This document shows positions 3,301-64,000 of a DNA stretch of 64,000 nt, in pieces. The position numbers and the translations under genes were made by a program. The first letter of the stretch is position 1. Each line of letters opens with the position of its first letter. Where the stretch lies: positions 17,298,001-17,362,000 of the forward strand of contig OZ059899.1 in assembly GCA_964057225.1 (NCBI GenBank), read 5' to 3'. This stretch comes from Auanema rhodensis. Lineage: Eukaryota > Animalia > Nematoda. The notes beneath the pieces are model-generated. The model saw only the letters and a list, made by a program, of their open reading frames with translations. It had not been told where the DNA came from and did no database searches.

Positions 3301-5265
3301 TCAACATTGCTTCCAAAAACATTTTGACAAAAAGTTTTTCGAAAAATTTCAAAATAATTTCGCAAAAAGTAAATGTTTTTAGATTCCTTTTTTTAAGGCA
3401 AAGACGATGGACAATGTTATTCAACGAAAAAATTAATTCTGCAGGGTGAAAATCGAGGATATAAGTGTGAACTTATATCAGTTGATATCTCGGTGCATTT
3501 TTAAGCTAGCGCAAATCTGATAACACAGATCGACGCAGTTTAAAAATCCGCATCGAATGCACTATACTACATTGAGAAACGCTTAATACAAAACTTAGTT
3601 ATGATCGTTTGAAAAAAGATGCATTAGTGTATGTTGAGTTTCCATGTACACTCAACATTGCTTCCAAAAACATTTTTACAAAAATTTTTCCGAAAAATTT
3701 CGAAATAATTTCGCAGAAAGTAGATGTTTTTAGATTCCTTTTTTCAAGGCAAAGACGATGGACAATGTTATTCAACGAAAAAATTAATTCTGCAGGGTGA
3801 AAATCGAGGATATAAGTGTGAACCTATATCAGTTGATATCTCGGTGCATTTTTAAGCTAGCGCAAATCTGATAACACAGATCGACGCAGCTTAAAAATCC
3901 GCATCGAATGCACTATACTACATTGAGAAACGCTTAATACAAAAATTAGTTATGATCGTTTGAAAAAAGATGCATTAGTGTATGTTGAGTTTCCATGTAC
4001 ACTCAACATTGCTTCCAAAAACATTTTTACAAAAATTTTTCCGAAAAATTTCGAAATAATTTCGCAAAAAGTAAATGTTTTTAGATTCCTTTTTTTAAGG
4101 CAAAGACGATGGACAATGTTATTCAACGAAAAAATTAATTCTGCAGGGTGAAAATCGAGGATATAAGTGTGAACCTATATCAGTTGATATCTCGGTGCAT
4201 TTTTAAGCTAGCGCAAATCTGATAACACAGATCGACGCAGCTTAAAAATCCGCATCGAATGCACTATACTACATTGAGAAACGCTTAATACAAAAATTAG
4301 TTATGATCGTTTGAAAAAAGATGCATTAGTGTATGTTGAGTTTCCATGTACACTCAACATTGCTTCCAAAAACATTTTTACAAAAATTTTTCCGAAAAAT
4401 TTCGAAATAATTTCGCAAAAAGTAAATGTTTTTAGATTCCTTTTTTTAAGGCAAAGACGATGGACAATGTTATTCAACGAAAAAATTAATTCTGCAGGGT
4501 GAAAATCGAGGATATAAGTGTGAACTTATATCAGTTGATATCTCGGTGCATTTTTAAGCTAGCGCAAATCTGATAACACAGATCGACGCAGTTTAAAAAT
4601 CCGCATCGAATGCACTATACTACATTGAGAAACGCTTAATACAAAACTTAGTTATGATCGTTTGAAAAAAGATGCATTAGTGTATGTTGAGTTTCCATGT
4701 ACACTCAACATTGCTTCCAAAAACATTTTTACAAAAATTTTTCCGAAAAATTTCGAAATAATTTCGCAGAAAGTAGATGTTTTTAGATTCCTTTTTTCAA
4801 GGCAAAGACGATGGACAATGTTATTCAACGAAAAAATTAATTCTCCAGGGTGAAAATCGAGGATGTAAGTGTGAGCTTATATCAGTTGATATCTCGGTGC
4901 ATTTTTAAGCTAGCGCAAATCTGATAACACAGATCGACGCAGTTTAAAAATCCGCATCGAATGCACTATACAACATTGAGAAACGCTTAATACAAAAATT
5001 AGTTATGATCGTTTGAAAAATGATGCATTAGTGTATGTTGAGTTTCCATGTACACTCAACATTGCTTCCAAAAACATTTTGACAAAAAGTTTTTCGAAAA
5101 ATTTCAAAATAATTTCGCAAAAAGTAAATGTTTTTAGATTCCTTTTTTTAAGGCAAAGACGATGGACAATGTTATTCAACGAAAAAATTAATTCTGCAGG
5201 GTGAAAATCGAGGATATAAGTGTGAACTTATATCAGTTGATATCTCGGTGCATTTTTAAGCTAGC

Positions 5266-8200
5266 GCAAATCTGATAACACAGATCGACGCAGTTTAAAA
5301 ATCCGCATCGAATGCACTATACTACATTGAGAAACGCTTAATACAAAACTTAGTTATGATCGTTTGAAAAAAGATGCATTAGTGTATGTTGAGTTTCCAT
5401 GTACACTCAACATTGCTTCCAAAAACATTTTTACAAAAATTTTTCCGAAAAATTTCGAAATAATTTCGCAGAAAGTAGATGTTTTTAGATTCCTTTTTTC
5501 AAGGCAAAGACGATGGACAATGTTATTCAACGAAAAAATTAATTCTCCAGGGTGAAAATCGAGGATGTAAGTGTGAGCTTATATCAGTTGATATCTCGGT
5601 GCATTTTTAAGCTAGCGCAAATCTGATAACACAGATCGACGCAGTTTAAAAAACCGCATCGAATGCACTATACTACATTGAGAAACGCTTAATACAAAAC
5701 TTAGTTATGATCGTTTGAAAAATGATGCATTAGTGTATGTTGAGTTTCCATGTACACTCAACATTGCTTCCAAAAACATTTTGACAAAAATTTTTTCGAA
5801 AAATTTCAGAATATTTTAGCAAAAAATAGTTGTTTTTAGATTCCTTTTTTCAAGGCAAAGACGATGGACAATGTTATTCAACGAAAAAATTAATTCTGCA
5901 GGGTGAAAATCGAGGATATAAGTGTGAACTTATATCAGTTGATATCTCGGTGCATTTTTAAGCTAGCGCAAATCTGATAACACAGATCGACGCAGCTTAA
6001 AAATCCGCATCGAATACACTATACTACATTGAGAAACGCTTAATACAAAAATTAGTTATGATCGTTTGAAAAATGATGCATTAGTGTATGTTGAGTTTCC
6101 ATGTACACTCAACATTGCTTCCAAAAACATTTTGACAAAAATTTTTTCGAAAAATTTCAAAATAATTTCGCAAAAAGTAAATGTTTTTAGATTCCTTTTT
6201 TTAAGGCAAAGACGATGGACAATGTTATTCAACGAAAAAATTAATTCTGCAGGGTGAAAATCGAGGATATAAGTGTGAACTTATATCAGTTGATATCTCG
6301 GTGCATTTTTAAGCTAGCGCAAATCTGATAACACAGATCGACGCAGTTTAAAAATCCGCATCGAATGCACTATACTACATTGAGAAACGCTTAATACAAA
6401 ACTTAGTTATGATCGTTTGAAAAAAGATGCATTAGTGTATGTTGAGTTTCCATGTACACTCAACATTGCTTCCAAAAACATTTTGACAAAAATTTTTCCA
6501 AAAAATTTCAAAATTATTTCGCAAAAAGTGAATGTTTTTAGATTCCGTTTTTCAAGGCAAAGACGATGGACAATGTTATTCAACGAAAAAATTAATTCTC
6601 CAGGGTGAAAATTGAGGATGTAAGTGTGAGCGTATATCAGTTGATATCTCGGTGCATTTTTAAGCTAGCGCAAATCTGATAACACAGATCGACGCAGCTT
6701 ACAAATCCGCATCGAATGCACTATACAACATTGAGAAACGCTTAATACAAAAATTAGTTATGATCGTTTGAAAAATGATGCATTAGTGTATGTTGCGTTT
6801 CCATGTACACTCAACATTGCTTCCAAAAACATTTTGACAAAAATTTTCCCGAAAAATTTCAAGATAATTTTACAAAAAGTAGATGTTTTTAGATTCCTTT
6901 TTTTAAGGCAAAGACGATGGACAATGTTATTCAACGAAAAAAATAATTCTGCAGGGTGAAAATCGAGGATATAAGTGTGAACTTATATCAGTTGATATCT
7001 CGGTGCATTTTTAAGCTAGCGCAAATCTGATAACACAGATCGACGCAGTTTAAAAATCCGCATCGAATGCACTATACTACATTGAGAAACGCTTAATACA
7101 AAACTTAGTTATGATCGTTTGAAAAAAGATGCAGTAGTGTATGTTGAGTTTCCATGTACACTCAACATTGCTTCCAAAAACATTTTTACAAAAATTTTTC
7201 CGAAAAATTTCGAAATAATTTCGCAGAAAGTAAATGTTTTTAGATTCCTTTTTTCAAGGCAAAGACGATGGACATTGTTATTCAACGAAAAAATTAATTC
7301 TGCAGGGTGAAAATCGAGGATATAAGTGTGAACCTATATCAGTTGATATCTCGGTGCATTTTTAAGCTAGCGCAAATCTGATAACACAGATCGACGCAGC
7401 TTAAAAATCCGCATCGAATGCACTATACTACATTGAGAAACGCTTAATACAAAAATTAGTTATGATCGTTTGAAAAATGATGCATTAGTGTATGTTGAGT
7501 TTCCATGTACACTCAACATTGCTTCCAAAAACATTTTGACAAAAATTCTTTCGAAAAATTTCAGAATATTTTAGCAAAAAATAGTTGTTTTTAGATTCCT
7601 TTTTTCAAGGCAAAGACGATGGACAATGTTATTCAACGAAAAAATTAATTCTGCAGGGTGAAAATCGAGGATATAAGTGTGAACTTATATCAGTTGATAT
7701 CTCGGTGCATTTTTAAGCTAGCGCAAATCTGATAACACAGATCGACGCAGCTTAAAAATCCGCATCGAATGCACTATACTACATTGAGAAACGCTTAATA
7801 CAAAACTTAGTTATGATCGTTTGAAAAAAGATGCATTAGTGTATGTTGAGTTTCCATGTACACTCAACATTGCTTCCAAAAACATTTTTACAAAAATTTT
7901 TCCGAAAAATTTCGAAATAATTTCGCAGAAAGTAGATGTTTTTAGATTCCTTTTTTCAAGGCAAAGACGATGGACATTGTTATTCAACGAAAAAATCAAT
8001 TCTGCAGGGTGAAAATCGAGGATATAAGTGTGAACTTATATCAGTTGATATCTCGGTGCATTTTTAAGCTAGCGCAAATCTGATAACACAGATCGACGCA
8101 GTTTAAAAAACCGCATCGAATGCACTATACTACATTGAGAAACGCTTAATACAAAACTTAGTTATGATCGTTTGAAAAATGATGCATTAGTGTATGTTGA

Positions 8201-14200: not shown

Positions 14201-15440
14201 CATTTTGACAAAAATTCTTTCGAAAAATTTCAGAATATTTTAGCAAAAAATAGTTGTTTTTAGATTCCTTTTTTCAAGGCAAAGACGATGGACAATGTTA
14301 TTCAACGAAAAAATTAATTCTGCAGGGTGAAAATCGAGGATATAAGTGTGAACTTATATCAGTTGATATCTCGGTGCATTTTTAAGCTAGCGCAAATCTG
14401 ATAACACAGATCGACGCAGCTTAAAAATCCGCATCGAATGCACTATACTACATTGAGAAACACTTAATACAAAACTTAGTTATGATCGTTTGAAAAAAGA
14501 TGCATTAGTGTATGTTGAGTTTCCATGTACACTCAACATTGCTTCCAAAAACATTTTTACAAAAATTTTTCCGAAAAATTTCGAAATAATTTCGCAGAAA
14601 GTAGATGTTTTTAGATTCCTTTTTTCAAGGCAAAGACGATGGACATTGTTATTCAACGAAAAAATCAATTCTGCAGGGTGAAAATCGAGGATATAAGTGT
14701 GAACTTATATCAGTTGATATCTCGGTGCATTTTTAAGCTAGCGCAAATCTGATAACACAGATCGACGCAGTTTAAAAAACCGCATCGAATGCACTATACT
14801 ACATTGAGAAACGCTTAATACAAAACTTAGTTATGATCGTTTGAAAAATGATGCATTAGTGTATGTTGAGTTTCCATGTACACTCAACATTGCTTCCAAA
14901 AACATTTTGACAAAACTTTTTTCGAAAAATTTCAGAATATTTTAGCAAAAAATAGTTGTTTTTAGATTCCTTTTTTCAAGGCAAAGACGATGGACAATGT
15001 TATTCAACGAAAAAATTAATTCTGCAGGGTGAAAATCGAGGATATAAGTGTGAACTTATATCAGTTGATATCTCGGTGCATTTTTAAGCTAGCGCAAATC
15101 TGATAACACAGATCGACGCAGCTTAAAAATCCGCATCGAATACACTATACTACATTGAGAAACGCTTAATACAAAACTTAGTTATGATCGTTTGAAAAAT
15201 GATGCATTAGTGTATGTTGAGTTTCCATGTACACTCAACATTGCTTCCAAAAACATTTTGACAAAAATTTTTTCGAAAAATTTCAAAATAATTTCACAAA
15301 AAGTAAATGTTTTTAGATTCCTTTTTTTAAGGCAAAGACGATGGACAATGTTATTCAACGAAAAAATTAATTCTCCAGGGTGAAAATTGAGGATGTAAGT
15401 GTGAGCGTATATCAGTTGATATCTCGGTGCATTTTTAAGC
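5266..15440 (+). repeat. Higher-order repeat: 10-mer, 9-mer, 10-mer
   Basis: The marker GTTGCGTTT sits at 6796, 10306 and 13465 (spacings 3510 and 3159). Monomer order is conserved, but the middle copy lacks the GCAGTAG-marked monomer (ORF starts 7119 and 13788). Ends are approximate. Confidence 0.9.
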
Positions 15441-24400: not shown

Positions 24401-24570
24401 GAAAAATTTCGAAATAATTTCGCAGAAAGTAGATGTTTTTAGATTCCTTTTTTCAAGGCAAAGACGATGGACATTGTTATTCAACGAAAAAATCAATTCT
24501 GCAGGGTGAAAATCGAGGATATAAGTGTGAACTTATATCAGTTGATATCTCGGTGCATTTTTAAGCTAGC
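13690..24570 (+). repeat. Higher-order repeat: 17-mer followed by a related 14-mer
   Basis: The GCAGTAG monomer is at 13788 and 19755 (offset 5967 = 17x351). The TTGATAAAA monomer is at 17649 and 22563 (offset 4914 = 14x351). The first unit has an internal 4-mer duplication (16245/17649, offset 1404). Confidence 0.85.
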
Positions 24571-34536: not shown

Positions 34537-34556
34537 ACTCACTACAAGATTTGCGC
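34537..34556. other. Inversion (strand-switch) junction between the two arms, with 4-nt filler CTAC at 34542-34545
   Basis: The sequence reads ...CATGTACACTCA|CTAC|AAGATTTGCGCTATC. The forward match ends at 34541 (expected continuation ACATTG). The reverse match starts at 34546 against the local allele GTTATAAGATTTGCGC, or at 34547 against the GTTATCAGAT allele. Confidence 0.97.
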
Positions 34557-43500: not shown

Positions 43501-46500
43501 GAAAATTTTTGTCAAAAAGTTTTTGGAAGCAATGTTGAGTGTACATGGAAACTCAACATACACTAATGCATCATTTTTCAAACGATCATAACTAATTTTT
43601 GTATTGAGCGTTTCTCAATGTAGTATAGTGCATTCGATGCGGATTATTAAGCTGCGTCGATCTGTGTTATCAGATTTGCGCTATCTTAAAAATGCACCGA
43701 GATATCAACTGATATAAGTTCACACTTATATCCTCGATTTTCACCCTGAAGAATTAATTTTTTTGTTGAATAACATTGTCCATCGTCTTCACCTTGAAAA
43801 AAGGAATCTAAAAACATCTACTTTTTGTAAAATTATTTTGAAATTTTTAGGGAAAATTTTTGTCAAAATGTTTTTGGAAGCAATGTTGAGTGTACATGGA
43901 AACTCAACATACACTAATGCATCATTTTTCAAACGATCATAACTAATTTTTGTATTGAGCGTTTCTCAATGTAGTATAGTGCATTCGATGCGGATTTTTA
44001 AGCTGCGTCGATCTGTGTTATCAGATTTGCGCTAGCTTAAAAATGCACCGAGATATCAACTGAAATAAGTTAACACATATATCCTCGATTTTCACCCTGA
44101 AGAATTAATTTTTTTGTTGAATAACATTGTCCATCGTTTTCGCCTTGAAAAAAGGAATCTAAAAACATCTACTTTTTGTAAAATTATTTTGAAATTTTTA
44201 GGGAAAATTTTTGTCAAAATGTTTTTGGAAGCAATGTTGAGTGTACATGGAAACTCAACATACACTAATGCATCATTTTTCAAACGATCATAACTAATTT
44301 TTGTATTGAGCGTTTCTCAATGTAGTATAGTGCATTCGATGCGGATTTTTAAGCTGCGTCGATCTGTGTTATCAGATTTGCGCTATCTTTAAAATGCACC
44401 GAGATATCAACTGATATAAGTTCACACTTATATCCTCGATTTTCACCCTGAAAAATTGATTTTTTCGTTGAATAACATTGTCCATCGTCTTTGCCTTGAA
44501 AAAAGGAATCTAAAAACATCTACTTTTTGTGAAATTATTTTGAAATTTTTAGGGAAAATTTTTGTCAAAAAGTTTTTGGAAGCAATGTTGAGTGTACATG
44601 GAAACTCAACATACACTAATGCATCATTTTTCAAACGATCATAACTAATTTTTGTATTGAGCGTTTCTCAATGTAGTATAGTGCATTCGATGCGGATTTT
44701 TAAGCTGCGTCGATCTATGTTATAAGATTTGCGCTATCTTTAAAATGCACCGATATATCAACTGATATAAGTTCACACTTATATCCTCGATTTTCACCCT
44801 GAAGAATTAATTTTTTTGTTGAATAACATTGTCCATCGTCTTCACCTTGAAAAAAGGAATCTAAAAACATCTACTTTTTGTGAAATTATTTTGAAATTTT
44901 TAGGGAAAATTTTTGTCAAAAAGTTTTTGGAAGCAATGTTGAGTGTACATGGAAACTCAACATACACTAATGCATCATTTTTCAAACGATCATAACTAAT
45001 TTTTGTATTGAGCGTTTCTCAATGTAGTATAGTGCATTCGATGCGGATTTTTAAGCTGCGTCGATCTATGTTATCAGATTTGCGCTATCTTAAAAATGCA
45101 CCGATATATCAACTGATATAAGTTCACACTTATATCCTCGATTTTCACCCTGAAGAATTAATTTTTTCGTTGAATAACACTGTCCATCGTCTTTGCCTTG
45201 AAAAACGAAATCTAAAAACATCTACTTTTTCTAAAATTATTTTGAAATTTTTAGGGAAAATTTTTGTCAAAATGTTTTTGGAAGCAATGTTGAGTGTACA
45301 TGGAAACTCAACATACACTAATGCATCATTTTTCAAACGATCATAACTAATTTTTGTATTGAGCGTTTCTCAATGTAGTATAGTGCATTCGATGCGGATT
45401 TTTAAGCTGCGTCGATCTATGTTATCAGATTTGCGCTATCTTTAAAATGCTCCGAGATATCAACTGATATAAGTTCACACTTATATCCTCGATTTTCACC
45501 CTGAAAAATTGATTTTTTCGTTGAATAACATTGTCCATCGTCTTTGCCTTGAAAAAAGGAATCTAAAAACATCTACTTTTTGTGAAATTATTTTGAAATT
45601 TTTAGGGAAAATTTTTGTCAAAAAGTTTTTGGAAGCAATGTTGAGTGTACATGGAAACTCAACATACACTAATGCATCATTTTTCAAACGATCATAACTA
45701 ATTTTTGTATTGAGCGTTTCTCAATGTAGTATAGTGCATTCGATGCGGATTTTTAAGCTGCGTCGATCTATGTTATCAGATTTGCGCTATCTTAAAAATG
45801 CACCGATATATCAACTGATATAAGTTCACACTTATATCCTCGATTTTCACCCTGAAGAATTAATTTTTTCGTTGAATAACACTGTCCATCGTCTTTGCCT
45901 TGAAAAACGAAATCTAAAAACATCTACTTTTTGTAAAATTATTTTGAAATTTTTAGGGAAAATTTTTGTCAAAATGTTTTTGGAAGCAATGTTGAGTGTA
46001 CATGGAAACTCAACATACACTAATGCATCATTTTTCAAACGATCATAACTAATTTTTGTATTGAGCGTTTCTCAATGTAGTATAGTGCATTCGATGCGGA
46101 TTTTTAAGCTGCGTCGATCTATGTTATCAGATTTGCGCTATCTTTAAAATGCACCGAGATATCAACTGATATAAGTTCACACTTATATCCTCGATTTTCA
46201 CCCTGAAAAATTGATTTTTTCGTTGAATAACATTGTCCATCGTCTTTGCCTTGAAAAAAGGAATCTAAAAACATCTACTTTTTGTGAAATTATTTTGAAA
46301 TTTTTAGGGAAAATTTTTGTCAAAAAGTTTTTGGAAGCAATGTTGAGTGTACATGGAAACTCAACATACACTAATGCATCATTTTTCAAACGATCATAAC
46401 TAATTTTTGTATTGAGCGTTTCTCAATGTAGTATAGTGCATTCGATGCGGATTTTTAAGCTGCGTCGATCTATGTTATAAGATTTGCGCTATCTTTAAAA

Positions 46501-47800
46501 TGCACCGATATATCAACTGATATAAGTTCACACTTATATCCTCGATTTTCACCCTGAAGAATTAATTTTTTTGTTGAATAACATTGTCCATCGTCTTCAC
46601 CTTGAAAAAAGGAATCTAAAAACATCTACTTTTTGTGAAATTATTTTGAAATTTTTAGGGAAAATTTTTGTCAAAAAGTTTTTGGAAGCAATGTTGAGTG
46701 TACATGGAAACTCAACATACACTAATGCATCATTTTTCAAACGATCATAACTAATTTTTGTATTGAGCGTTTCTCAATGTAGTATAGTTCATTCGATGCG
46801 GATTTTCAAGCTGCGTCGATCTATGTTATAAGATTTGCGCTATCTTTAAAATGCACCGATATATCAACTGATATAAGTTCACACTTATATCCTCGATTTT
46901 CACCCTGAAGAATTAATTTTTTTGTTGAATAACATTGTCCATCGTTTTCGCCTTGAAAAAAGGAATCTAAAAACATCTACTTTTTGTAAAATTATTTTGA
47001 AATTTTTAGGGAAAATTTTTGTCAAAATGTTTTTGGAAGCAATGTTGAGTGTACATGGAAACTCAACATACACTAATGCATCATTTTTCAAACGATCATA
47101 ACTAATTTTTGTATTGAGCGTTTCTCAATGTAGTATAGTGCATTCGATGCGGATTTTTAAGCTGCGTCGATCTATGTTATCAGATTTGCGCTATCTTTAA
47201 AATGCACCGATATATCAACTGATATAAGTTCACACTTATATCCTCGATTTTCACCCTGAAGAATTAATTTTTTTGTTGAATAACATTGTCCATCGTCTTC
47301 ACCTTGAAAAAAGGAATCTAAAAACATCTACTTTTTGTAAAATTATTTTGAAATTTTTAGGGAAAATTTTTGTCAAAATGTTTTTGGAAGCAATGTTGAG
47401 TGTACATGGAAACTCAACATACACTAATGCATCATTTTTCAAACGATCATAACTAATTTTTGTATTGAGCGTTTCTCAATGTAGTATAGTGCATTCGATG
47501 CGGATTTTTAAGCTGCGTCGATCTATGTTATAAGATTTGCGCTATCTTAAAAATGCACCGATATATCAACTGATATAAGTTCACACTTATATCCTCGATT
47601 TTCACCCTGAAGAATTAATTTTTTTGTTGAATAACATTGTCCATCGTCTTCACCTTGAAAAAAGGAATCTAAAAACATCTACTTTTTGTGAAATTATTTT
47701 GAAATTTTTAGGGAAAATTTTTGTCAAAAAGTTTTTGGAAGCAATGTTGAGTGTACATGGAAACTCAACATACACTAATGCATCATTTTTCAAACGATCA
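34546..47800 (-). repeat. Junction-proximal, highly homogeneous sub-domain of the right arm
   Basis: Dominated by the haplotype CTATGTTATAAGATTTGCGCTATCTTTAAAATGCACCGATATATC. The AAAACGAAAT marker monomer sits at ORFs 36020, 37424, 38125, 39529 and 41284 (spacings of 4, 2, 4 and 5 monomers). The distal boundary is approximate. Confidence 0.85.
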
Positions 47801-50800
47801 TAACTAATTTTTGTATTAAGCGTTTCTCAATGTAGTATAGTGCATTCGATGCGGATTTTTAAGCTGCGTCGATCTGTGTTATCAGATTTGCGCTAGCTTA
47901 AAAATGCACCGAGATATCAACTGAAATAAGTTAACACATATATCCTCGATTTTCACCCTGAAGAATTAATTTTTTTGTTGAATAACATTGTCCATCGTCT
48001 TCGCCTTGAAAAAAGGAATCTAAAAACATCTACTTTTTGTGAAATTATTTTGAAATTTTTAGGGAAAATTTTTGTCAAAATGTTTTTGGAAGCAATGTTG
48101 AGTGTACATGGAAACTCAACATACACTAATGCATCATTTTTCAAACGATCATAACTAATTTTCGTATAAAGCGTTTCTCAATGTAGTATAGTGCATTCGA
48201 TGGGGATTTTTAAGCTGCGTCGATCTATGTTATCAGATTTGCGCTATCTTTAAAATGCACCGAGATATCAACTGTTATAAGTTCACACTTATTTCCTCGA
48301 TTTTCACCCTGAAGAATTAATTTTTTTGTTGAATAACATTGTCCATCGTCTTCGCCTTGAAAAAAGAAATCTAAAAACATCTACTTTTTGTGAAATTATT
48401 TTGAAATTTTTAGGGAAAATTTTTGTCAAAATGTTTTTGGAAGCAATGTTGAGTGTACATGGAAACTCAACATACACTAATACATCATTTTTTAAACGAT
48501 CATAACTAATTTTTGTATTGAGGGTTTCTCAATGTAGTATAGTGCATTCGATGCGGATTTTTAAGCTGCGTCGATCTGTGTTATCAGATTTGCGCTATCT
48601 TTAAAATGCACCGAGATATCAACTGATATAAGTTCACACTTATATCCTCGATTTTCACCCTGAAAAATTGATTTTTTCGTTGAATAACATTGTCCATCGT
48701 CTTTGCCTTAAAAAAAGGAATCTAAAAACATCTACTTTTTGTAAAATTATTTTGAAATTTTTAGGGAAAATTTTTGTCAAAATGTTTTTGGAAGCAATGT
48801 TGAGTGTACATGGAAACTCAACATACACTAATACATCATTTTTTAAACGATCATAACTAATTTTTGTATTAAGCGTTTCTCAATGTAGTATAGTGCATTC
48901 GATGCGGATTTTTAAGCTGCGTCGATCTGTGTTATCAGATTTGCGCTAGCTTAAAAATGCACCGAGATATCAACTGATATAAGTTCACACTTATATCCTC
49001 GATTTTCACCCTGAAAAATTGATTTTTTCGTTGAATAACATTGTCCATCGTCTTTGCCTTGAAAAAAGGAATCTAAAAACATCTACTTTTTGTGAAATTA
49101 TTTTGAAATTTTCAGAGAAAATTTTTGTCAAAATGTTTTTGGAAGCAATGTTGAGTGTACATGGAAACTCAACATACACTAATGCATCATTTTTCAAACG
49201 ATCATAACTAATTTTTGTATTAAGCGTTTCTCAATGTAGTATAGTGCATTCGATGCGGATTTTTAAGCTGCGTCGATCTGTGTTATCAGATTTGCGCTAG
49301 CTTAAAAATGCACCGAGATATCAACTGATATAAGTTTACACTTATATCCTCGATTTTCACCCTGGAGAATTAATTTTTTCGTTGAATAACAATGTCCATC
49401 GTCTTCGCCTTAAAAAAAAAATCTGAAAACATCTACTTTTTGTGAAATTATTTTGAAATTTTTAGGGAAAATTTTTGTCAAAATGTTTTTGGAAGCAATG
49501 TTGAGTGTACATGGAAACTCAACATACACTAATGCATCATTTTTCAAACGATCATAACTAATTTTGTATTGAGCGTTTCTCAATGTAGTATAGTGCATTC
49601 GATGGGGATTTTTAAGCTGCGTCGATCTATGTTATCAGATTTGCGCTATCTTTAAAATGCACCGAGATATCAACTGTTATAAGTTCACACTTATATCCTC
49701 GATTTTCACCCTGAAGAATTAATTTTTTTGTTGAATAACATTGTCCATCGTCTTCGCCTTGAAAAAAGAAATCTAAAAACATCTACTTTTTGTGAAATTA
49801 TTTTGAAATTTTTCGGGAAAATTTTTGTCAAAATGTTTTTGGAAGCAATGTTGAGTGTACATGGAAACTCAACATACACTAATGCATCATTTTTCAAACG
49901 ATCATAACTAATTTTTGTATTGAGCGTTTCTCAATGTAGTATAGTGCATTCGATGCGGATTTTTAAGCTGCGTCGATCTATGTTATCAGATTTGCGCTAT
50001 CTTTAAAATGCACCGAGATATCAACTGTTATAAGTTCACACTTATATCCTCGATTTTCACCCTGAAGAATTAATTTTTTTGTTGAATAACATTGTCCATC
50101 GTCTTTGCCTTGAAAAAAGAAATCTAAAAACATCTACTTTTTGTAAAATTATTTTGAAATTTTTAGGGAAAATTTTTGTCAAAATGTTTTTGGAAGCAAT
50201 GTTGAGTGTACATGGAAACTCAACATACACTAATACATCATTTTCTAAACGATCATAACTAATTTTTGTATTGAGCGTTTCTCAATGTAGTATAGTGCAT
50301 TCGATGCGGATTTTTAAGCTGCGTCGATCTGTGTTATCAGATTTGCGCTATCTTAAAAATGCACCGAGATATCAACTGATATAAGTTCACACTTATATCC
50401 TCGATTTTCACCCTGAAAAATTGATTTTTTCGTTGAATAACATTGTCCATCGTCTTTGCCTTGAAAAAAGGAATCTAAAAACATCTACTTTTTGTGAAAT
50501 TATTTTGAAATTTTCAGAGAAAATTTTTGTCAAAATGTTTTTGGAAGCAATGTTGAGTGTACATGGAAACTCAACATACACTAATGCATCATTTTTCAAA
50601 CGATCATAACTAATTTTTGTATTGAGCGTTTCTCAATGTAGTATAGTGCATTCGATGCGGATTTTTAAGCTGCGTCGATCTATGTTATCAGATTTGCGCT
50701 ATCTTTAAAATGCACCGAGATATCAACTGTTATAAGTTCACACTTATATCCTCGATTTTCACCCTGAAGAATTAATTTTTTTGTTGAATAACATTGTCCA

Positions 50801-53800
50801 TCGTCTTCGCCTTGAAAAAAGGAATCTAAAAACATCTACTTTTTGTGAAATTATTTTGAAATTTTTAGGGAAAATTTTTGTCAAAATGTTTTTGGAAGCA
50901 ATGTTGAGTGTACATGGAAACTCAACATACACTAATACATCATTTTTTAAACGATCATAACTAATTTTTGTATTGAGGGTTTCTCAATGTAGTATAGTGC
51001 ATTCGATGCGGATTTTTAAGCTGCGTCGATCTGTGTTATCAGATTTGCGCTATCTTTAAAATGCACCGAGATATCAACTGATATAAGTTCACACTTATAT
51101 CCTCGATTTTCACCCTGAAAAATTGATTTTTTCGTTGAATAACATTGTCCATCGTCTTTGCCTTGAAAAAAGGAATCTAAAAACATCTACTTTTTGTAAA
51201 ATTATTTTGAAATTTTTAGGGAAAATTTTTGTCAAAATGTTTTTGGAAGCAATGTTGAGTGTACATGGAAACTCAACATACACTAATACATCATTTTTTA
51301 AACGATCATAACTAATTTTTGTATTAAGCGTTTCTCAATGTAGTATAGTGCATTCGATGCGGATTTTTAAGCTGCGTCGATCTGTGTTATCAGATTTGCG
51401 CTAGCTTAAAAATGCACCGAGATATCAACTGATATAAGTTCACACTTATATCCTCGATTTTCACCCTGAAAAATTGATTTTTTCGTTGAATAACATTGTC
51501 CATCGTCTTTGCCTTGAAAAAAGGAATCTAAAAACATCTACTTTTTGTGAAATTATTTTGAAATTTTCAGAGAAAATTTTTGTCAAAATGTTTTTGGAAG
51601 CAATGTTGAGTGTACATGGAAACTCAACATACACTAATGCATCATTTTTCAAACGATCATAACTAATTTTTGTATTGAGCGTTTCTCAATGTAGTATAGT
51701 GCATTCGATGCGGATTTTTAAGCTGCGTCGATCTATGTTATCAGATTTGCGCTATCTTTAAAATGCACCGAGATATCAACTGTTATAAGTTCACACTTAT
51801 ATCCTCGATTTTCACCCTGAAGAATTAATTTTTTTGTTGAATAACATTGTCCATCGTCTTCGCCTTGAAAAAAGGAATCTAAAAACATCTACTTTTTGTG
51901 AAATTATTTTGAAATTTTTAGGGAAAATTTTTGTCAAAATGTTTTTGGAAGCAATGTTGAGTGTACATGGAAACTCAACATACACTAATACATCATTTTT
52001 TAAACGATCATAACTAATTTTTGTATTGAGGGTTTCTCAATGTAGTATAGTGCATTCGATGCGGATTTTTAAGCTGCGTCGATCTGTGTTATCAGATTTG
52101 CGCTATCTTTAAAATGCACCGAGATATCAACTGATATAAGTTCACACTTATATCCTCGATTTTCACCCTGAAAAATTGATTTTTTCGTTGAATAACATTG
52201 TCCATCGTCTTTGCCTTGAAAAAAGGAATCTAAAAACATCTACTTTTTGTAAAATTATTTTGAAATTTTTAGGGAAAATTTTTGTCAAAATGTTTTTGGA
52301 AGCAATGTTGAGTGTACATGGAAACTCAACATACACTAATACATCATTTTTTAAACGATCATAACTAATTTTTGTATTAAGCGTTTCTCAATGTAGTATA
52401 GTGCATTCGATGCGGATTTTTAAGCTGCGTCGATCTGTGTTATCAGATTTGCGCTAGCTTAAAAATGCACCGAGATATCAACTGATATAAGTTCACACTT
52501 ATATCCTCGATTTTCACCCTGAAAAATTGATTTTTTCGTTGAATAACATTGTCCATCGTCTTTGCCTTGAAAAAAGGAATCTAAAAACATCTACTTTTTG
52601 TGAAATTATTTTGAAATTTTCAGAGAAAATTTTTGTCAAAATGTTTTTGGAAGCAATGTTGAGTGTACATGGAAACTCAACATACACTAATGCATCATTT
52701 TTCAAACGATCATAACTAATTTTTGTATTAAGCGTTTCTCAATGTAGTATAGTGCATTCGATGCGGATTTTTAAGCTGCGTCGATCTGTGTTATCAGATT
52801 TGCGCTAGCTTAAAAATGCACCGAGATATCAACTGATATAAGTTTACACTTATATCCTCGATTTTCACCCTGGAGAATTAATTTTTTCGTTGAATAACAA
52901 TGTCCATCGTCTTCGCCTTAAAAAAAAAATCTGAAAACATCTACTTTTTGTGAAATTATTTTGAAATTTTTAGGGAAAATTTTTGTCAAAATGTTTTTGG
53001 AAGCAATGTTGAGTGTACATGGAAACTCAACATACACTAATGCATCATTTTTCAAACGATCATAACTAATTTTGTATTGAGCGTTTCTCAATGTAGTATA
53101 GTGCATTCGATGGGGATTTTTAAGCTGCGTCGATCTATGTTATCAGATTTGCGCTATCTTTAAAATGCACCGAGATATCAACTGTTATAAGTTCACACTT
53201 ATATCCTCGATTTTCACCCTGAAGAATTAATTTTTTTGTTGAATAAGATTGTCCATCGTCTTTGCCTTGAAAAAAGAAATCTAAAAACATCTACTTTTTG
53301 TAAAATTATTTTGAAATTTTTAGGGAAAATTTTTGTCAAAATGTTTTTGGAAGCAATGTTGAGTGTACATGGAAACTCAACATACACTAATGCATCATTT
53401 TTCAAACGATCATAACTAATTTTCGTATAAAGCGTTTCTCAATGTAGTATAGTGCATTCGATGCGGATTTTTAAGCTGCGTCGATCTGTGTTATCAGATT
53501 TGCGCTAGCTTAAAAATGCACCGAGATATCAACTGAAATAAGTTAACACATATATCCTCGATTTTCACCCTGAAGAATTAATTTTTTTGTTGAATAACAT
53601 TGTCCATCGTCTTCGCCTTGAAAAAAGAAATCTAAAAACATCTACTTTTTGTGAAATTATTTTGAAATTTTTAGGGAAAATTTTTGTCAAAATGTTTTTG
53701 GAAGCAATGTTGAGTGTACAGGGAAACTCAACATACACTAATACATCATTTTTTAAACGATCATAACTAATTTTTGTATTGAGGGTTTCTCAATGTAGTA

Positions 53801-56800
53801 TAGTGCATTCGATGCGGATTTTTAAGCTGCGTCGATCTGTGTTATCAGATTTGCGCTATCTTTAAAATGCACCGAGATATCAACTGATATAAGTTCACAC
53901 TTATATCCTCGATTTTCACCCTGAAAAATTGATTTTTTCGTTGAATAACATTGTCCATCGTCTTTGCCTTAAAAAAAGGAATCTAAAAACATCTACTTTT
54001 TGTAAAATTATTTTGAAATTTTTAGGGAAAATTTTTGTCAAAATGTTTTTGGAAGCAATGTTGAGTGTACATGGAAACTCAACATACACTAATACATCAT
54101 TTTTTAAACGATCATAACTAATTTTTGTATTAAGCGTTTCTCAATGTAGTATAGTGCATTCGATGCGGATTTTTAAGCTGCGTCGATCTGTGTTATCAGA
54201 TTTGCGCTAGCTTAAAAATGCACCGAGATATCAACTGATATAAGTTCACACTTATATCCTCGATTTTCACCCTGAAAAATTGATTTTTTCGTTGAATAAC
54301 ATTGTCCATCGTCTTTGCCTTGAAAAAAGGAATCTAAAAACATCTACTTTTTGTGAAATTATTTTGAAATTTTCAGAGAAAATTTTTGTCAAAATGTTTT
54401 TGGAAGCAATGTTGAGTGTACATGCAAACTCAACATACACTAATGCATCATTTTTCAAACGATCATAACTAATTTTTGTATTAAGCGTTTCTCAATGTAG
54501 TATAGTGCATTCGATGCGGATTTTTAAGCTGCGTCGATCTATGTTATCAGATTTGCGCTAGCTTAAAAATGCACCGAGATATCAACTGATATAAGTTCAC
54601 ACTTATATCCTCGATTTTCACCCTGAAAAATTGATTTTTTCGTTGAATAACATTGTCCATCGTCTTTGCCTTGAAAAAAGGAATCTAAAAACATCTACTT
54701 TTTGTGAAATTATTTTGAAATTTTTCGGGAAAATTTTTGTCAAAATGTTTTTGGAAGCAATGTTGAGTGTACATGGAAACTCAACATACACTAATGCATC
54801 ATTTTTCAAACGATCATAACTAATTTTTGTATTGAGCGTTTCTCAATGTAGTATAGTGCATTCGATGCGGATTTTTAAGCTGCGTCGATCTATGTTATCA
54901 GATTTGCGCTATCTTTAAAATGCACCGAGATATCAACTGTTATAAGTTCACACTTATATCCTCGATTTTCACCCTGAAGAATTAATTTTTTTGTTGAATA
55001 ACATTGTCCATCGTCTTTGCCTTGAAAAAAGAAATCTAAAAACATCTACTTTTTGTAAAATTATTTTGAAATTTTTAGGGAAAATTTTTGTCAAAATGTT
55101 TTTGGAAGCAATGTTGAGTGTACATGGAAACTCAACATACACTAATGCATCATTTTTCAAACGATCATAACTAATTTTCGTATAAAGCGTTTCTCAATGT
55201 AGTATAGTGCATTCGATGCGGATTTTTAAGCTGCGTCGATCTGTGTTATCAGATTTGCGCTAGCTTAAAAATGCACCGAGATATCAACTGAAATAAGTTA
55301 ACACATATATCCTCGATTTTCACCCTGAAGAATTAATTTTTTTGTTGAATAACATTGTCCATCGTCTTCGCCTTGAAAAAAGAAATCTAAAAACATCTAC
55401 TTTTTGTGAAATTATTTTGAAATTTTTAGGGAAAATTTTTGTCAAAATGTTTTTGGAAGCAATGTTGAGTGTACATGGAAACTCAACATACACTAATACA
55501 TCATTTTTTAAACGATCATAACTAATTTTTGTATTGAGGGTTTCTCAATGTAGTATAGTGCATTCGATGCGGATTTTTAAGCTGCGTCGATCTGTGTTAT
55601 CAGATTTGCGCTATCTTTAAAATGCACCGAGATATCAACTGATATAAGTTCACACTTATATCCTCGATTTTCACCCTGAAAAATTGATTTTTTCGTTGAA
55701 TAACATTGTCCATCGTCTTTGCCTTAAAAAAAGGAATCTAAAAACATCTACTTTTTGTAAAATTATTTTGAAATTTTTAGGGAAAATTTTTGTCAAAATG
55801 TTTTTGGAAGCAATGTTGAGTGTACATGGAAACTCAACATACACTAATACATCATTTTTTAAACGATCATAACTAATTTTTGTATTAAGCGTTTCTCAAT
55901 GTAGTATAGTGCATTCGATGCGGATTTTTAAGCTGCGTCGATCTGTGTTATCAGATTTGCGCTAGCTTAAAAATGCACCGAGATATCAACTGATATAAGT
56001 TCACACTTATATCCTCGATTTTCACCCTGAAAAATTGATTTTTTCGTTGAATAACATTGTCCATCGTCTTTGCCTTGAAAAAAGGAATCTAAAAACATCT
56101 ACTTTTTGTGAAATTATTTTGAAATTTTCAGAGAAAATTTTTGTCAAAATGTTTTTGGAAGCAATGTTGAGTGTACATGGAAACTCAACATACACTAATG
56201 CATCATTTTTCAAACGATCATAACTAATTTTTGTATTAAGCGTTTCTCAATGTAGTATAGTGCATTCGATGCGGATTTTTAAGCTGCGTCGATCTGTGTT
56301 ATCAGATTTGTGCTATCTTAAAAATGCACCGAGATATCAACTGATATAAGTTTACACTTATATCCTCGATTTTCACCCTGGAGAATTAATTTTTTCGTTG
56401 AATAACAATGTCCATCGTCTTTGCCTTGAAAAAAGAAATCTGAAAACATCTACTTTTTGTGAAATTATTTTGAAATTTTTAGGGAAAATTTTTGTCAAAA
56501 TGTTTTTGGAAGCAATGTTGAGTGTACATGGAAACTCAACATACACTAATGCATCATTTTTCAAACGATCATAACTAATTTTGTATTGAGCGTTTCTCAA
56601 TGTAGTATAGTGCATTCGATGGGGATTTTTAAGCTGCGTCGATCTATGTTATCAGATTTGCGCTATCTTTAAAATGCACCGAGATATCAACTGTTATAAG
56701 TTCACACTTATATCCTCGATTTTCACCCTGAAGAATTAATTTTTTTGTTGAATAACATTGTCCATCGTCTTCGCCTTGAAAAAAGAAATCTAAAAACATC

Positions 56801-57300
56801 TACTTTTTGTGAAATTATTTTGAAATTTTTCGGGAAAATTTTTGTCAAAATGTTTTTGGAAGCAATGTTGAGTGTACATGGAAACTCAACATACACTAAT
56901 GCATCATTTTTCAAACGATCATAACTAATTTTTGTATTGAGCGTTTCTCAATGTAGTATAGTGCATTCGATGCGGATTTTTAAGCTGCGTCGATCTATGT
57001 TATCAGATTTGCGCTATTTTTAAAATGCACCGAGATATCAACTGTTATAAGTTCACACTTATATCCTCGATTTTCACCCTGAAGAATTAATTTTTTTGTT
57101 GAATAACATTGTCCATCGTCTTTGCCTTGAAAAAAGAAATCTAAAAACATCTACTTTTTGTAAAATTATTTTGAAATTTTTAGGGAAAATTTTTGTCAAA
57201 ATGTTTTTGGAAGCAATGTTGAGTGTACATGGAAACTCAACATACACTAATACATCATTTTCTAAACGATCATAACTAATTTTTGTATTGAGGGTTTCTC
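47800..57300 (-). repeat. Right-arm domain with ~10-mer periodicity and nested 3-mer and 5-mer repeats
   Basis: A 1-bp deletion (CTAATTTTGTATTG) linked to GATGGGGAT occurs at ~49560, ~53070 and ~56580 (spacings 3508 and 3509). The TTCAGAGAAA monomer occurs at 50408/51461/52514 (spacing 1053) and 54267/56022 (spacing 1755). Confidence 0.85.
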
Positions 57301-60300
57301 AATGTAATATAGTGCATTCGATGCGGATTTTTAAGCTGCGTCGATCTGTGTTATCAGATTTGTGCTATCTTAAAAATGCACCGAGATATCAACTGATATA
57401 AGTTCACACTTATATCCTCGATTTTCACCCTGAAGAATTAATTTTTTTGTTGAATAACATTGTCCATCGTCTTTGCCTTGAAAAAAGAAATCTAAAAACA
57501 TCTACTTTTTGTAAAATTATTTTGAAATTTTTAGGGAAAATTTTTGTCAAAATGTTTTTGGAAGCAATGTTGAGTGTACATGGAAACTCAACATACACTA
57601 ATACATCATTTTCTAAACGATCATAACTAATTTTTGTATTGAGCGTTTCTCAATGTAGTATAGTGCATTCGATGCGGATTTTTAAGCTGCGTCGATCTAT
57701 GTTATCAGATTTGCGCTATCTTTAAAATGCACCGAGATATCAACTGTTATAAGTTCACACTTATATCCTCGATTTTCACCCTGAAGAATTAATTTTTTTG
57801 TTGAATAACATTGTCCATCGTCTTCGCCTTGAAAAAAGGAATCTAAAAACATCTACTTTTTGTGAAATTATTTTGAAATTTTTAGGGAAAATTTTTGTCA
57901 AAATGTTTTTGGAAGCAATGTTGAGTGTACATGGAAACTCAACATACACTAATACATCATTTTTTAAACGATCATAACTAATTTTTGTATTGAGGGTTTC
58001 TCAATGTAGTATAGTGCATTCGATGCGGATTTTTAAGCTGCGTCGATCTGTGTTATCAGATTTGCGCTAGCTTAAAAAAGCACGGAGATATCAACTGATA
58101 TAAGTTCACACTTATATCCTCGATTTTCACCCTGAAGAATTAATTTTTTTGTTGAATAACATTGTCCATCGTCTTCGCCTTGAAAAAAGGAATCTAAAAA
58201 CATCTACTTTTTGTGAAATTATTTCGAAATTTTTAGGGAAAATTTCTGTCAAAATGTTTTTGGAAGCAATGTTGAGTGTACATGGAAACTCAACATACAC
58301 TAATACATCATTTTTTAAACGATCATAACTAATTTTTGTATTGAGGGTTTCTCAATGTAGTATAGTGCATTCGATGCGGATTTTTAAGCTGCGTCGATCT
58401 GTGTTATCAGATTTGCGCTAGCTTAAAAATGCACCGAGATATCAACTGATATAAGTTCACACTTATATCCTCGATTTTCACCCTGAAGAATTAATTTTTT
58501 TGTTGAATAACATTGTCCATCGTCTTCGCCTTGAAAAAAGGAATCTAAAAACATCTACTTTTTGTGAAATTATTTCGAAATTTTTAGGGAAAATTTCTGT
58601 CAAAATGTTTTTGGAAGCAATGTTGAGTGTACATGGAAACTCAACATACACTAATACATCATTTTTTAAACGATCATAACTAATTTTTGTATTGAGGGTT
58701 TCTCAATGTAGTATAGTGCATTCGATGCGGATTTTTAAGCTGCGTCGATCTGTGTTATCAGATTTGCGCTAGCTTAAAAAAGCACCGAGATATCAACTGA
58801 TATAAGTTCACACTTATATCCTCGATTTTCACCCTGAAGAATTAATTTTTTTGTTGAATAACATTGTCCATCGTCTTCGCCTTGAAAAAAGGAATCTAAA
58901 AACATCTACTTTTCGTGAAATTATTTCGAAATTTTTAGGTAAAATTTTTGTCAAAATGTTTTTGAAAGCAATGTTGAGTGTACATGGAAACTCAACATAC
59001 ACTAATGCATCATTTTTCAAACGATCATAACTAATTTTTGTATTGAGGGTTTCTCAATGTAGTATAGTGCATTCGATGCGGATTTTTAAGCTGCGTCGAT
59101 CTATGTTATCAGATTTGCGCTATCTTTAAAATGCACCGAGATATCAACTGTTATAAGTTCACACTTATATCCTCGATTTTCACCCTGAAGAATTAATTTT
59201 TTTGTTGAATAACATTGTCCATCGTCTTTGCCTTGAAAAAAGAAATCTAAAAACATCTACTTTTTGTAAAATTATTTTGAAATTTTTAGGGAAAATTTTT
59301 GTCAAAATGTTTTTGGAAGCAATGTTGAGTGTACATGGAAACTCAACATACACTAATGCATCATTTTTCAAACGATCATAACTAATTTTTGTATTGAGGG
59401 TTTCTCAATGTAGTATAGTGCATTCGATGCGGATTTTTAAGCTGCGTCGATCTGTGTTATCAGATTTGCGCTATCTTTAAAAATGCACCGAGATATCAAC
59501 TGAAATAAGTTAACACATATATCCTCGATTTTCACCCTGAAGAATTAATTTTTTTGTTGAATAACATTGTCCATCGTCTTCGCCTTGAAAAAAGAAATCT
59601 AAAAACATCTACTTTTTGTGAAATTATTTTGAAATTTTTAGGGAAAATTTTTGTCAAAATGTTTTTGGAAGCAATGTTGAGTGTACATGGAAACTCAACA
59701 TACACTAATGCATCATTTTCCAAACGATCATAACTAATTTTCGTATTAAGCGTTTCTCAATGTAGTATAGTGCATTCGATGCGGATTTTTAAGCTGCGTC
59801 GATCTGTGTTATCAGATTTGCGCTAGCTTAAAAATGCACCGAGATATCAACTGAAATAAGTTAACACATATATCCTCGATTTTCACCCTGAAGAATTAAT
59901 TTTTTTGTTGAATAACATTGTCCATCGTCTTCGCCTTAAAAAAAGGAATCTAAAAACATCTACTTTTTGTGAAATTATTTTGAAATTTTTAGGGAAAATT
60001 TTTGTCAAAATGTTTTTGAAAGCAATGTTGAGTGTACATGGAAACTCAACATACACTAATACATCATTTTTTAAACGATCATAACTAATTTTTGTATTGA
60101 GGGTTTCTCAATGTAGTATAGTGCATTCGATGCGGATTTTTAAGCTGCGTCGATCTGTGTTATCAGATTTGCGCTATCTTTAAAATGCACCGAGATATCA
60201 ACTGATATAAGTTCACACTTATATCCTCGATTTTCACCCTGAAGAATTAATTTTTTTGTTGAATAACCTTGTCCATCGTCTTCACCTTGAAAAAAGGAAT

Positions 60301-63300
60301 CTAAAAACATCTACTTTTTGTGAAATTATTTTGAAATTTTCAGAGAAAATTTTTGTCAAAATGTTTTTGGAAGCAATGTTGAGTGTACATGGAAACTCAA
60401 CATACACTAATGCATCATTTTTCAAACGATCATAACTAATTTTTGTATTAAGCGTTTCTCAATGTAGTATAGTGCATTCGATGCGGATTTTTAAGCTGCG
60501 TCGATCTGTGTTATCAGATTTGCGCTAGCTTAAAAATGCACCGAGATATCAACTGATATAAGTTTACACTTATATCCTCGATTTTCACCCTGGAGAATTA
60601 ATTTTTTTGTTGAATAACATTGTCCATCGTCTTCGCCTTGAAAAAAGGAATCTAAAAACATCTACTTTTTGTGAAATTATTTTGAAATTTTTAGGGAAAA
60701 TTTTTGTCAAAATGTTTTTGGAAGCAATGTTGAGTGTACATGGAAACTCAACATACACTAATACATCATTTTTCAAACGATCATAACTAATTTTCGTATT
60801 AAGCGTTTCTCAATGTAGTATAGTGCATTCGATGCGGATTTTTAAGCTGCGTCGATCTGTGTTATCAGATTTGCGCTAGCTTAAAAATGCACCGAGATAT
60901 CAACTGATATAAGTTCACACTTATATCCTCGATTTTCACCCTGAAGAATTAATTTTTTTGTTGAATAACATTGTCCATCGTCTTCACCTTGAAAAAAGGA
61001 ATCTAAAAACATCTACTTTTTGTGAAATTATTTCGAAATTTTTAGGGAAAATTTTTGTCAAAATGTTTTTGGAAGCAATGTTGAGTGTACATGGAAACTC
61101 AACATACACTAATACATCATTTTTTAAACGATCATAACTAATTTTTGTATTGAGGGTTTCTCAATGTAGTATAGTGCATTCGATGCGGATTTTTAAGCTG
61201 CGTCGATCTGTGTTATCAGATTTGCGCTAGCTTAAAAAAGCACCGAGATATCAACTGATATAAGTTCACACTTATATCCTCGATTTTCACCCTGAAGAAT
61301 TAATTTTTTTGTTGAATAACATTGTCCATCGTCTTCGCCTTGAAAAAAGGAATCTAAAAACATCTACTTTTCGTGAAATTATTTCGAAATTTTTAGGTAA
61401 AATTTTTGTCAAAATGTTTTTGAAAGCAATGTTGAGTGTACATGGAAACTCAACATACACTAATGCATCATTTTTCAAACGATCATGACTAATTTTTGTA
61501 TTGAGGGTTTCTCAATGTAGTATAGTGCATTCGATGCGGATTTTTAAGCTGCGTCGATCTGTGTTATCAGATTTGCGCTAGCTTAAAAATGCACCGAGAT
61601 ATCAACTGATATAAGTTCACACTTATATCCTCGATTTTCACCCTGAAGAATTAATGTTTTTGTTGAATAACATTGTCCATCGTCTTCACCTTGAAAAAAG
61701 GAATCTAAAAACATCTACTTTTTGTGAAATTATTTTGAAATTTTTAGGGAAAATTTTTGTCAAAAAGTTTTTGGAAGCAATGTTGAGTGTACATGGAAAC
61801 TCAACATACACTAATGCATCATTTTTCAAACGATCATAACTAATTTTCGTATTAAGCGTTTCTCAATGTAGTATAGTGCATTCGATGCGGATTTTTAAGC
61901 TGCGTCGATCTGTGTTATCAGATTTGCGCTAGCTTAAAAATGCACCGAGATATCAACTGAAATAAGTTAACACATATATCCTCGATTTTCACCCTGAAGA
62001 ATTAATTTTTTTGTTGAATAACATTGTCCATCGTCTTCGCCTTAAAAAAAGGAATCTAAAAACATCTACTTTTTGTGAAATTATTTTGAAATTTTTAGGG
62101 AAAATTTTTGTCAAAATGTTTTTGGAAGCAATGTTGAGTGTACATGGAAACTCAACATACACTAATACATCATTTTTTAAACGATCATAACTAATTTTTG
62201 TATTGAGGGTTTCTCAATGTAGTATAGTGCATTCGATGCGGATTTTTAAGCTGCGTCGATCTGTGTTATCAGATTTGCGCTATCTTTAAAAATGCACCGA
62301 GATATCAACTGATATAAGTTCACACTTATATCCTCGATTTTCACCCTGAAGAATTACTTTTTTTGTTGAATAACATTGTCCATCGTCTTCGCCTTGAAAA
62401 AAGGAATCTAAAAACATCTACTTTTTGTGAAATTATTTTGAAATTTTTAGGGAAAATTTTTGTCAAAAAGTTTTTGGAAGCAATGTTGAGTGTACATGGA
62501 AACTCAACATACACTAATGCATCATTTTTCAAACGATCATAACTAATTTTCGTATTAAGCGTTTCTCAATGTAGTATAGTGCATTCGATGCGGATTTTTA
62601 AGCTGCGTCGATCTGTGTTATCAGATTTGCGCTAGCTTAAAAATGCACCGAGATATCAACTGAAATAAGTTAACACATATATCCTCGATTTTCACCCTGA
62701 AGAATTAATTTTTTTGTTGAATAACATTGTCCATCGTCTTCGCCTTAAAAAAAGGAATCTAAAAACATCTACTTTTTGTGAAATTATTTTGAAATTTTCA
62801 GAGAAAATTTTTGTCAAAATGTTTTTGGAAGCAATGTTGAGTGTACATGGAAACTCAACATACACTAATGCATCATTTTTCAAACGATCATAACTAATTT
62901 TTGTATTAAGCGTTTCTCAATGTAGTATAGTGCATTCGATGCGGATTTTTAAGCTGCGTCGATCTGTGTTATCAGATTTGCGCTAGCTTAAAAATGCACC
63001 GAGATATCAACTGATATAAGTTTACACTTATATCCTCGATTTTCACCCTGGAGAATTAATTTTTTTGTTGAATAACATTGTCCATCGTCTTCGCCTTGAA
63101 AAAAGGAATCTAAAAACATCTACTTTTTGTGAAATTATTTTGAAATTTTTAGGGAAAATTTTTGTCAAAATGTTTTTGGAAGCAATGTTGAGTGTACATG
63201 GAAACTCAACATACACTAATACATCATTTTTTAAACGATCATAACTAATTTTTGTATTGAGGGTTTCTCAATGTAGTATAGTGCATTCGATGCGGATTTT

Positions 63301-64000
63301 TAAGCTGCGTCGATCTGTGTTATCAGATTTGCGCTATCTTTAAAATGCACCGAGATATCAACTGATATAAGTTCACACTTATATCCTCGATTTTCACCCT
63401 GAAAAATTGATTTTTTCGTTGAATAACATTGTCCATCGTCTTTGCCTTGAAAAAAGGAATCTAAAAACATCTACTTTTTGTAAAATTATTTTGAAATTTT
63501 TAGGTAAAATTTTTGTCAAAATGTTTTTGAAAGCAATGTTGAGTGTACATGGAAACTCAACATACACTAATGCATCATTTTTCAAACGATCATGACTAAT
63601 TTTTGTATTGAGCGTTTCTCAATGTAGTATAGTGCCTTCGATGCGGATTTTTAAGCTGCGTCGATTTGTGTTATCAGATTTGCGCTATCTTTAAAATGCA
63701 CCGAGATATCAACTGATATAAGTTCACACTTATATCCTCGATTTTCACCCTGAAGAATTAATTTTTTTGTTGAATAACCTTGTCCATCGTCTTCACCTTC
63801 AAAAAGGAATCTAAAAACATCTACTTTTTGTAAAATTATTCTGAAATTTTTAGGGAAAATTTTTGTCAAAATGTTTTTGGAAGCAATGTTGAGTGTACAT
63901 GGAAACTCAACATACACTAATGCATCATTTTTCAAACGATCATAACTAATTTTTGTATCAAGCGTTTCTCAATGTAGTATAGTGCATTCGAATCGGATTT

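Follow-up and report, generated by a model that had tools for sequence, protein, structure and literature searches.

A single orientation switch between two subfamilies of a 351-bp satellite in a terminal repeat block of Auanema rhodense C7

Satellite arrays and the orientation switch

We analysed a 64-kb stretch of the Auanema rhodense genome (C7:17,298,001–17,362,000, hereafter the window), in which a long satellite array reverses its orientation once. The germline assembly of 180.9 Mb was built from PacBio HiFi and Hi-C data and contains seven chromosomes, and multi-megabase terminal blocks of tandem repeats, which are eliminated from the soma, are common to the autosomes (preprint 10.64898/2026.08.27.747507, 2026). 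Inversions and repeat orientation are not mentioned in that preprint. The assembly sequence comprises 180,911,798 bases in 112 pieces, C7 is 21.47 Mb long, and the window belongs to a terminal repeat block, at a distance of 4.1 Mb from the end of the contig. A preliminary description of the window had viewed the array in the light of centromeric satellites. Rhabditid nematodes are holocentric, and the terminal repeat block is described as germline-restricted; a centromeric framing therefore seems not to apply.

The whole window consists of a single AT-rich satellite with a 351-bp unit and a G+C content of 30–32%. Tandem Repeats Finder resolved period 351 in two arrays, at 1–34541 (98.4 copies, 96% matches) and 34547–64000 (83.9 copies, 97% matches). 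The AT skew changed from +0.08 to −0.09 across 34–36 kb of the window, and a scan with a 20-nt anchor gave 99 plus-strand copies up to 34405, followed by 83 minus-strand copies from 34898 onward. These results confirm the single flip at 34541/34546 that had been noticed by inspection. One monomer family is thus found on both sides of one discrete breakpoint in opposed orientation, which is the definition of a satellite strand switch.

We numbered the monomer from TGATAAC as position 1 of 351. The left arm ends with the letters ACACTCA at 34541 (monomer position 137), and the right arm opens at 34547 at monomer position 351/1 in its own orientation, within a small ATCTG/CAGAT hairpin. The truncated last monomer of the left arm and the filler that follows it (Table 1) form an unpaired centre of about 141 nt. 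The nearest symmetric pairing was obtained between 34000–34405 and 34547–34952, which are 94% complementary; the pairing of 34405 with 34547 around some 140 unpaired nucleotides, as first proposed, was reproduced with a measured distance of 141 nt. An alternative pairing register gives a loop of 220 nt. When the 543 nt around the centre were folded as a single strand, one long hairpin was predicted (−189 kcal/mol, z = −31.6). The two small hairpins that hold the breakpoints are likewise present in a predicted fold. The Rfam microRNA hairpin model MIR8562 aligned across the junction (34358–34594) with a score of 48.6 bits, far below its gathering score of 211, and this match was rejected as an artefact of the inverted repeat.

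No microhomology was found at the junction. The filler together with the preceding A reads ACTACA, and the same 6 nt occur approximately 90 nt upstream in the truncated left monomer, a match that is within chance. The 40-mer spanning the junction occurs only once in the 181-Mb genome when up to 3 mismatches are allowed.

The abundance of the satellite was estimated from a conserved 26-mer, which gave at least 121,485 matches genome-wide (57,635 forward and 63,850 reverse). This number of copies corresponds to about 42.6 Mb and hence to roughly one quarter of the assembled sequence. The AT-1 fluorescence in situ hybridization probe of the preprint has 138,553 matches in the genome with a period of 176 bp (about 24 Mb) and is absent from the 64-kb window, which indicates that AT-1 and the 351-bp family are separate major repeats. 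The possibilities that the 351-bp monomer is a dimer of a 176-bp unit or a relative of a neighbouring 182-bp satellite were rejected, as no similarity was observed, and the 182-bp satellite is itself distinct from the AT-1 repeat. A literature search for the 351-bp satellite returned nothing relevant.

In a family of at least 120,000 copies, a junction sequence that occurs only once could reflect an assembly misjoin or chimeric reads, and the flip would then be absent from the animal. Read coverage in repeat-rich regions is only about 29-fold, but most reads map uniquely in repeats (preprint 10.64898/2026.08.27.747507). We fetched 100 kb on either side of the window (264 kb in total; outside positions are given in window coordinates) and found no N bases, which argues against a scaffolding join. 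Furthermore, an overlap-based assembly needs reads that carry the flip in order to join opposite orientations, and the filler and the truncated monomer resemble real repair products. The arms are also not identical mirrors, unlike the product of chimeric fold-back reads. A misjoin is therefore quite unlikely in our estimation.

Subfamilies on the two sides of the switch

We extracted and aligned 98 left-arm and 83 right-arm monomers from the window to compare the two arms, and the wider analysis, with the flanks included, covered 669 monomers. Monomer pairs differed on average at 11.2 sites in the left arm and at 10.7 in the right arm, whereas pairs taken from different arms differed at 19.5. 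These values indicate that the arms are built from two different subfamilies, as had been suggested, which we call L-type and R-type. When the 181 monomers of the window were placed in a maximum-likelihood tree, their orientation switched once, compared with about 55 switches for shuffled labels. The monomers of the two arms therefore separate without intermixing, so that the outcome by which the preliminary description would have been refuted did not occur, and the boundary is sharp. The tree of all 669 monomers contained two orientation changes only, and the support for the minus-strand clade was 94.

The same split was observed at seven diagnostic sites, where plus-strand monomers carried 0–2 R-type states and minus-strand monomers carried 3–7, with one plus-strand exception, an edge monomer adjoining an island of the 182-bp satellite to the right of the window. 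The closest approach of any minus-strand monomer to any plus-strand monomer was 9 differences. The plus-strand arrays beyond the island differed from the left arm at 12–13 sites, whereas the adjoining inverted block differed from the left arm at 19–21 sites and from the plus-strand arrays as a whole at 18–21. Since those plus-strand arrays lie at least 78 kb farther off than the inverted block, distance does not account for the split.

The genomic distribution of the R-type was examined using a 38-mer that combines three right-arm states. This 38-mer gave 14 forward and 541 reverse matches genome-wide; six of the matches listed are on C4. The first match on C7, at 17,333,045, is 504 bp past the junction, and no match lies proximal to it on C7. 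Monomers with 99–100% identity to the R-type monomers beside the junction were found on C7 at 17.51–17.54, 18.27–18.31, 19.48, and 20.40 Mb, all in minus orientation. The R-type is thus spread over about 3 Mb of C7 distal to the junction. L-type monomers were found at 98% identity on C1, C3, C4, and C6.

We then compared the arms across the junction. The mean number of differences between mirror pairs was 19.58, compared with 19.61 ± 0.07 for permutations, and offsets from −5 to +5 gave similar values. These results indicate that the arms are not in-register mirror copies from the junction outward. The monomer pairs nearest the junction were among the most diverged, with 20–22 differences. The divergence of the flanking monomers that had been described was therefore observed, but at 20 of 351 sites rather than at 17–18. 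The 21 right-arm monomers nearest the junction differed from each other at just 2–4 sites, in agreement with the small differences between neighbours first described there, and monomers identical to those of this homogenised zone recur about 0.2 and 1 Mb further along C7.

No edge decay was detected at the junction, where the first left monomer deviates from the arm consensus at 7 sites (arm mean, 7.6). When the ten nearest monomers to the left and the ten to the right of the junction were compared with the full set of 669, they showed only one private singleton in total. Monomers that lie against a unique junction are not replaceable by unequal crossing-over, so an old junction should show private changes. 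The lack of edge decay and the near absence of private variants thus point to the joining of two already diverged domains, and the joint appears to be young relative to the split of the two variants. In regard to the two alternatives offered by the preliminary description, an old junction is disfavoured, and the joining of two diverged domains fits best with the lack of mirror register, the lack of edge decay, and the presence of the R-type elsewhere on C7 at 99–100% identity.

An old fold-back in situ, in which a break or a template switch during replication gave rise to an inverted duplication whose mirror arms later diverged by independent homogenisation, was also considered. Its head-to-head junction and short asymmetric spacer are features shared by this locus; the spacer of about 141 nt has the size known from fold-back junctions, and both breakpoints lie within hairpins. 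However, the arms of such inverted duplications keep a mirror register, unlike the arms here at any offset from −5 to +5, and the pairs adjacent to the junction, being the most diverged, also disagree with this explanation. The junction monomers without edge decay and with almost no private variants, the spread of the R-type over megabases of distal C7, and a joint without microhomology are likewise not expected from it. We regard a fold-back as unlikely.

The wider locus

The features of the 264 kb examined are listed in Table 1. The minus-strand block is an island between plus-strand arrays of the left-arm type. The preliminary description had placed the start of a symmetric dyad at 4950 and given it 29-kb arms; these values were set merely by the end of the window, and the real arms, at least 134 kb and 66 kb long, are not symmetric. 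The far end of the minus-strand block lies at monomer position ~161, where it abuts the 182-bp satellite. The block is most heterogeneous at this end, where neighbours show 14–16 differences and the edge monomers are intermediate. The first plus-strand monomer past the island (112269) carries 4 of the 7 right-arm states, which marks it as a hybrid or ancestral edge monomer; the edges at the main junction, by contrast, are clean.

Table 1. Features of the switch and its surroundings (window coordinates).
Feature	Position	Strand	Remarks
Plus-strand array, 351-bp satellite	before −99,670 to 34,541	+	at least 134 kb
Left arm, L-type subfamily	1–34541	+	98 full monomers in the window; extends at least 100 kb before the window start
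Last left-arm monomer, truncated at position 137/351	34405–34541	+	2/137 sites off the L consensus
Left breakpoint in a hairpin of the monomer with a 9-bp stem (ATGTTGAGT / ACTCAACAT)	34518–34541	+	3′ stem severed after ACTCA
5-nt filler CTACA, foreign to both arms	34542–34546	none	reading of the sequence
Minus-strand block, 351-bp satellite	34,547–100,684	−	66.1 kb
Right arm, R-type subfamily	34547–64000	−	83 full monomers in the window; runs to 100684, 66.1 kb in total
Recently homogenised zone	34547–42300	−	~22 monomers, 0–5 sites off their own consensus
Island of 182-bp satellite, unrelated to the 351-bp unit, 27% G+C	100,685–112,203	own strand switch ~0.8 kb before the right end	11.5 kb; far boundary of the inverted block
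Plus-strand array, 351-bp satellite	112,204–118,376	+	
Insertion	118,377–134,052		15.7 kb
Plus-strand array, 351-bp satellite	134,053 to beyond 164,000	+	

The middle of the right arm (46000–64000, continuing to 76000) holds two copies of a duplicated segment of 24 monomers (8.4 kb), which was recognised from the decrease in differences at lag 24 to 7, compared with 12 at other lags, and from the absence of a dip at lag 48.

The 15.7-kb insertion (C7:17,416,377–17,432,052) is bounded by terminal inverted repeats, each about 760 bp long, and AACATA appears to be its 6-bp target duplication. Matches of its open reading frames were to an integrase core with a chromodomain, a protein-primed DNA polymerase B, an adenovirus-type protease (weakly), and an ATPase (weakly). 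This predicted gene set is that of a Maverick/Polinton element. The insertion site, at monomer positions ~135–141, falls in the monomer hairpin that also contains the flip's left breakpoint.

A transposon that targets this hairpin, at position ~137, might accordingly have made the left break, for example by aberrant transposition or excision, since a Maverick/Polinton-type element lies in the same hairpin 84 kb to the right. This is, however, a single positional coincidence. No recognisable element sequence was observed at the junction, the filler CTACA agrees with the element end CTACT in just 4 of 5 letters, and the right breakpoint lies at another monomer position. We consider this explanation very unlikely.

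The 351-bp matches also change strand within C1:3,253,943–3,255,839, C4:1.296–1.798 Mb, and C3:0.575–1.837 Mb, which indicates that the terminal blocks of other chromosomes have strand switches as well. At monomer site 196, the C4 variants with the G state and those with the A state are mostly on opposite strands.

Strand switches within long satellite arrays are well known from human alpha-satellite, Arabidopsis CEN180, and others in complete assemblies. The A. rhodense switch resembles those of alpha-satellite and CEN180 in its single monomer family on both sides, its opposed orientation, its discrete breakpoint, and its differing local variants; unlike them, it is located in a terminal block of a holocentric nematode and apparently not in a centromere. 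In the macro-dyads of Tribolium, the genus for which the term was introduced, thousands of copies of the inversion-site sequences exist with ~98% identity, and direct and inverted sub-arrays are of similar length as a tendency; the authors state that such symmetries are known only in that genus (PMC13081366). The locus shares with Tribolium inverted sub-arrays of tens of kilobases, a minor satellite beside the major one, and predicted giant hairpins. Major and minor satellites intermingle in Tribolium and have conserved transition zones; at this locus, one 11.5-kb island of the 182-bp satellite adjoins the right arm. Unlike in Tribolium, the junction 40-mer is unique, and the arms (at least 134 kb compared with 66.1 kb) are of unequal length and belong to different subfamilies.

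These likenesses raise the possibility of a selected structural macro-dyad of the Tribolium kind, in which giant hairpins would serve the organisation of chromatin, pairing, or elimination. Inverted sub-arrays of many kilobases do exist here, the minor satellite adjoins the right arm, strand switches are present on other chromosomes, and the single-stranded centre is predicted to fold very stably. A unique junction sequence is nevertheless not a conserved inversion site, and the arms, which are very unequal and 5.6% diverged, showed no sign of selection. A selected structure is, in our judgement, highly improbable.

Origin and meaning of the joint

These results lead us to consider it probable, with some reserve, that the flip represents one non-homologous joint, unique in the genome, in the terminal satellite, which unites two array domains that were already diverged and oppositely oriented. 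The plus-strand domain would be the long one, whose variant is present on several chromosomes; the minus-strand domain would be the 66-kb block, whose variant is almost confined to C7, to minus orientation, and to the region distal to the joint. The joint looks like an ordinary rearrangement scar, the product of a kind of event already known; it resembles neither a landmark of a centromere nor a genuine mirror copy.

The joint is blunt, and its lack of microhomology together with a 5-nt filler is a signature of end joining and not of homologous exchange. We therefore suggest that a double-strand break repaired by end joining may have produced the joint. Both breaks lie in hairpins of the monomer, the left one in the 3′ stem of the 9-bp hairpin and the right one in a 5-bp hairpin at the monomer boundary. 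In the C. elegans germline, polymerase-theta-mediated end joining is the route reported for breaks associated with replication; it leaves short templated inserts, to which the filler may be likened.

Once formed, the opposed orientation would block unequal crossing-over between the two sides, and each side would homogenise alone. On the basis of published studies of yeast and bacterial inverted repeats, it is plausible, in line with the preliminary description, that the 141-nt spacer and the 5–6% mismatch (about 5.7%) would strongly disfavour cruciform extrusion in duplex DNA and thereby stabilise the locus.

Several observations weigh against this account. The candidate template for the filler is a match of only 6 nt, which is well within chance. 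Gene conversion could keep the edge monomers fresh and thereby give the joint too young an appearance. The phase of ~161 at the far end of the minus-strand block, beside the 182-bp satellite, misfits a simple inversion whose near end is at 137. The small chance of a misjoin given above also applies to the joint. Moreover, an inversion, an insertion, and a larger exchange are all candidates for the event. The simple two-break inversion was rejected, because with a near end at position 137 the far end should lie at 138 instead of ~161, and because the far end abuts a different satellite.

The locus represents no new kind of element or mechanism, and its added value is modest, consisting of a clean subfamily boundary that is locked to orientation. 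It offers a clean and datable case in which a change of orientation parts two homogenisation domains within a huge satellite, and the same-orientation arrays farther away serve as a control, because they indicate that the split is more than an effect of distance. For A. rhodense, the joint is the point at which a chromosome-specific repeat variant has its proximal limit, and it is a spot where the correctness of the assembly matters. A broader proposal, which we hold to be doubtful, is that opposite-orientation sub-arrays are separate units of concerted evolution and that the terminal blocks are mosaics of inverted domains, resembling macro-dyads outside Tribolium. If this were true, the terminal blocks would provide a natural test of how orientation limits homogenisation in DNA reported to be destined for elimination, and the inverted domains might have a structural role in meiotic pairing.

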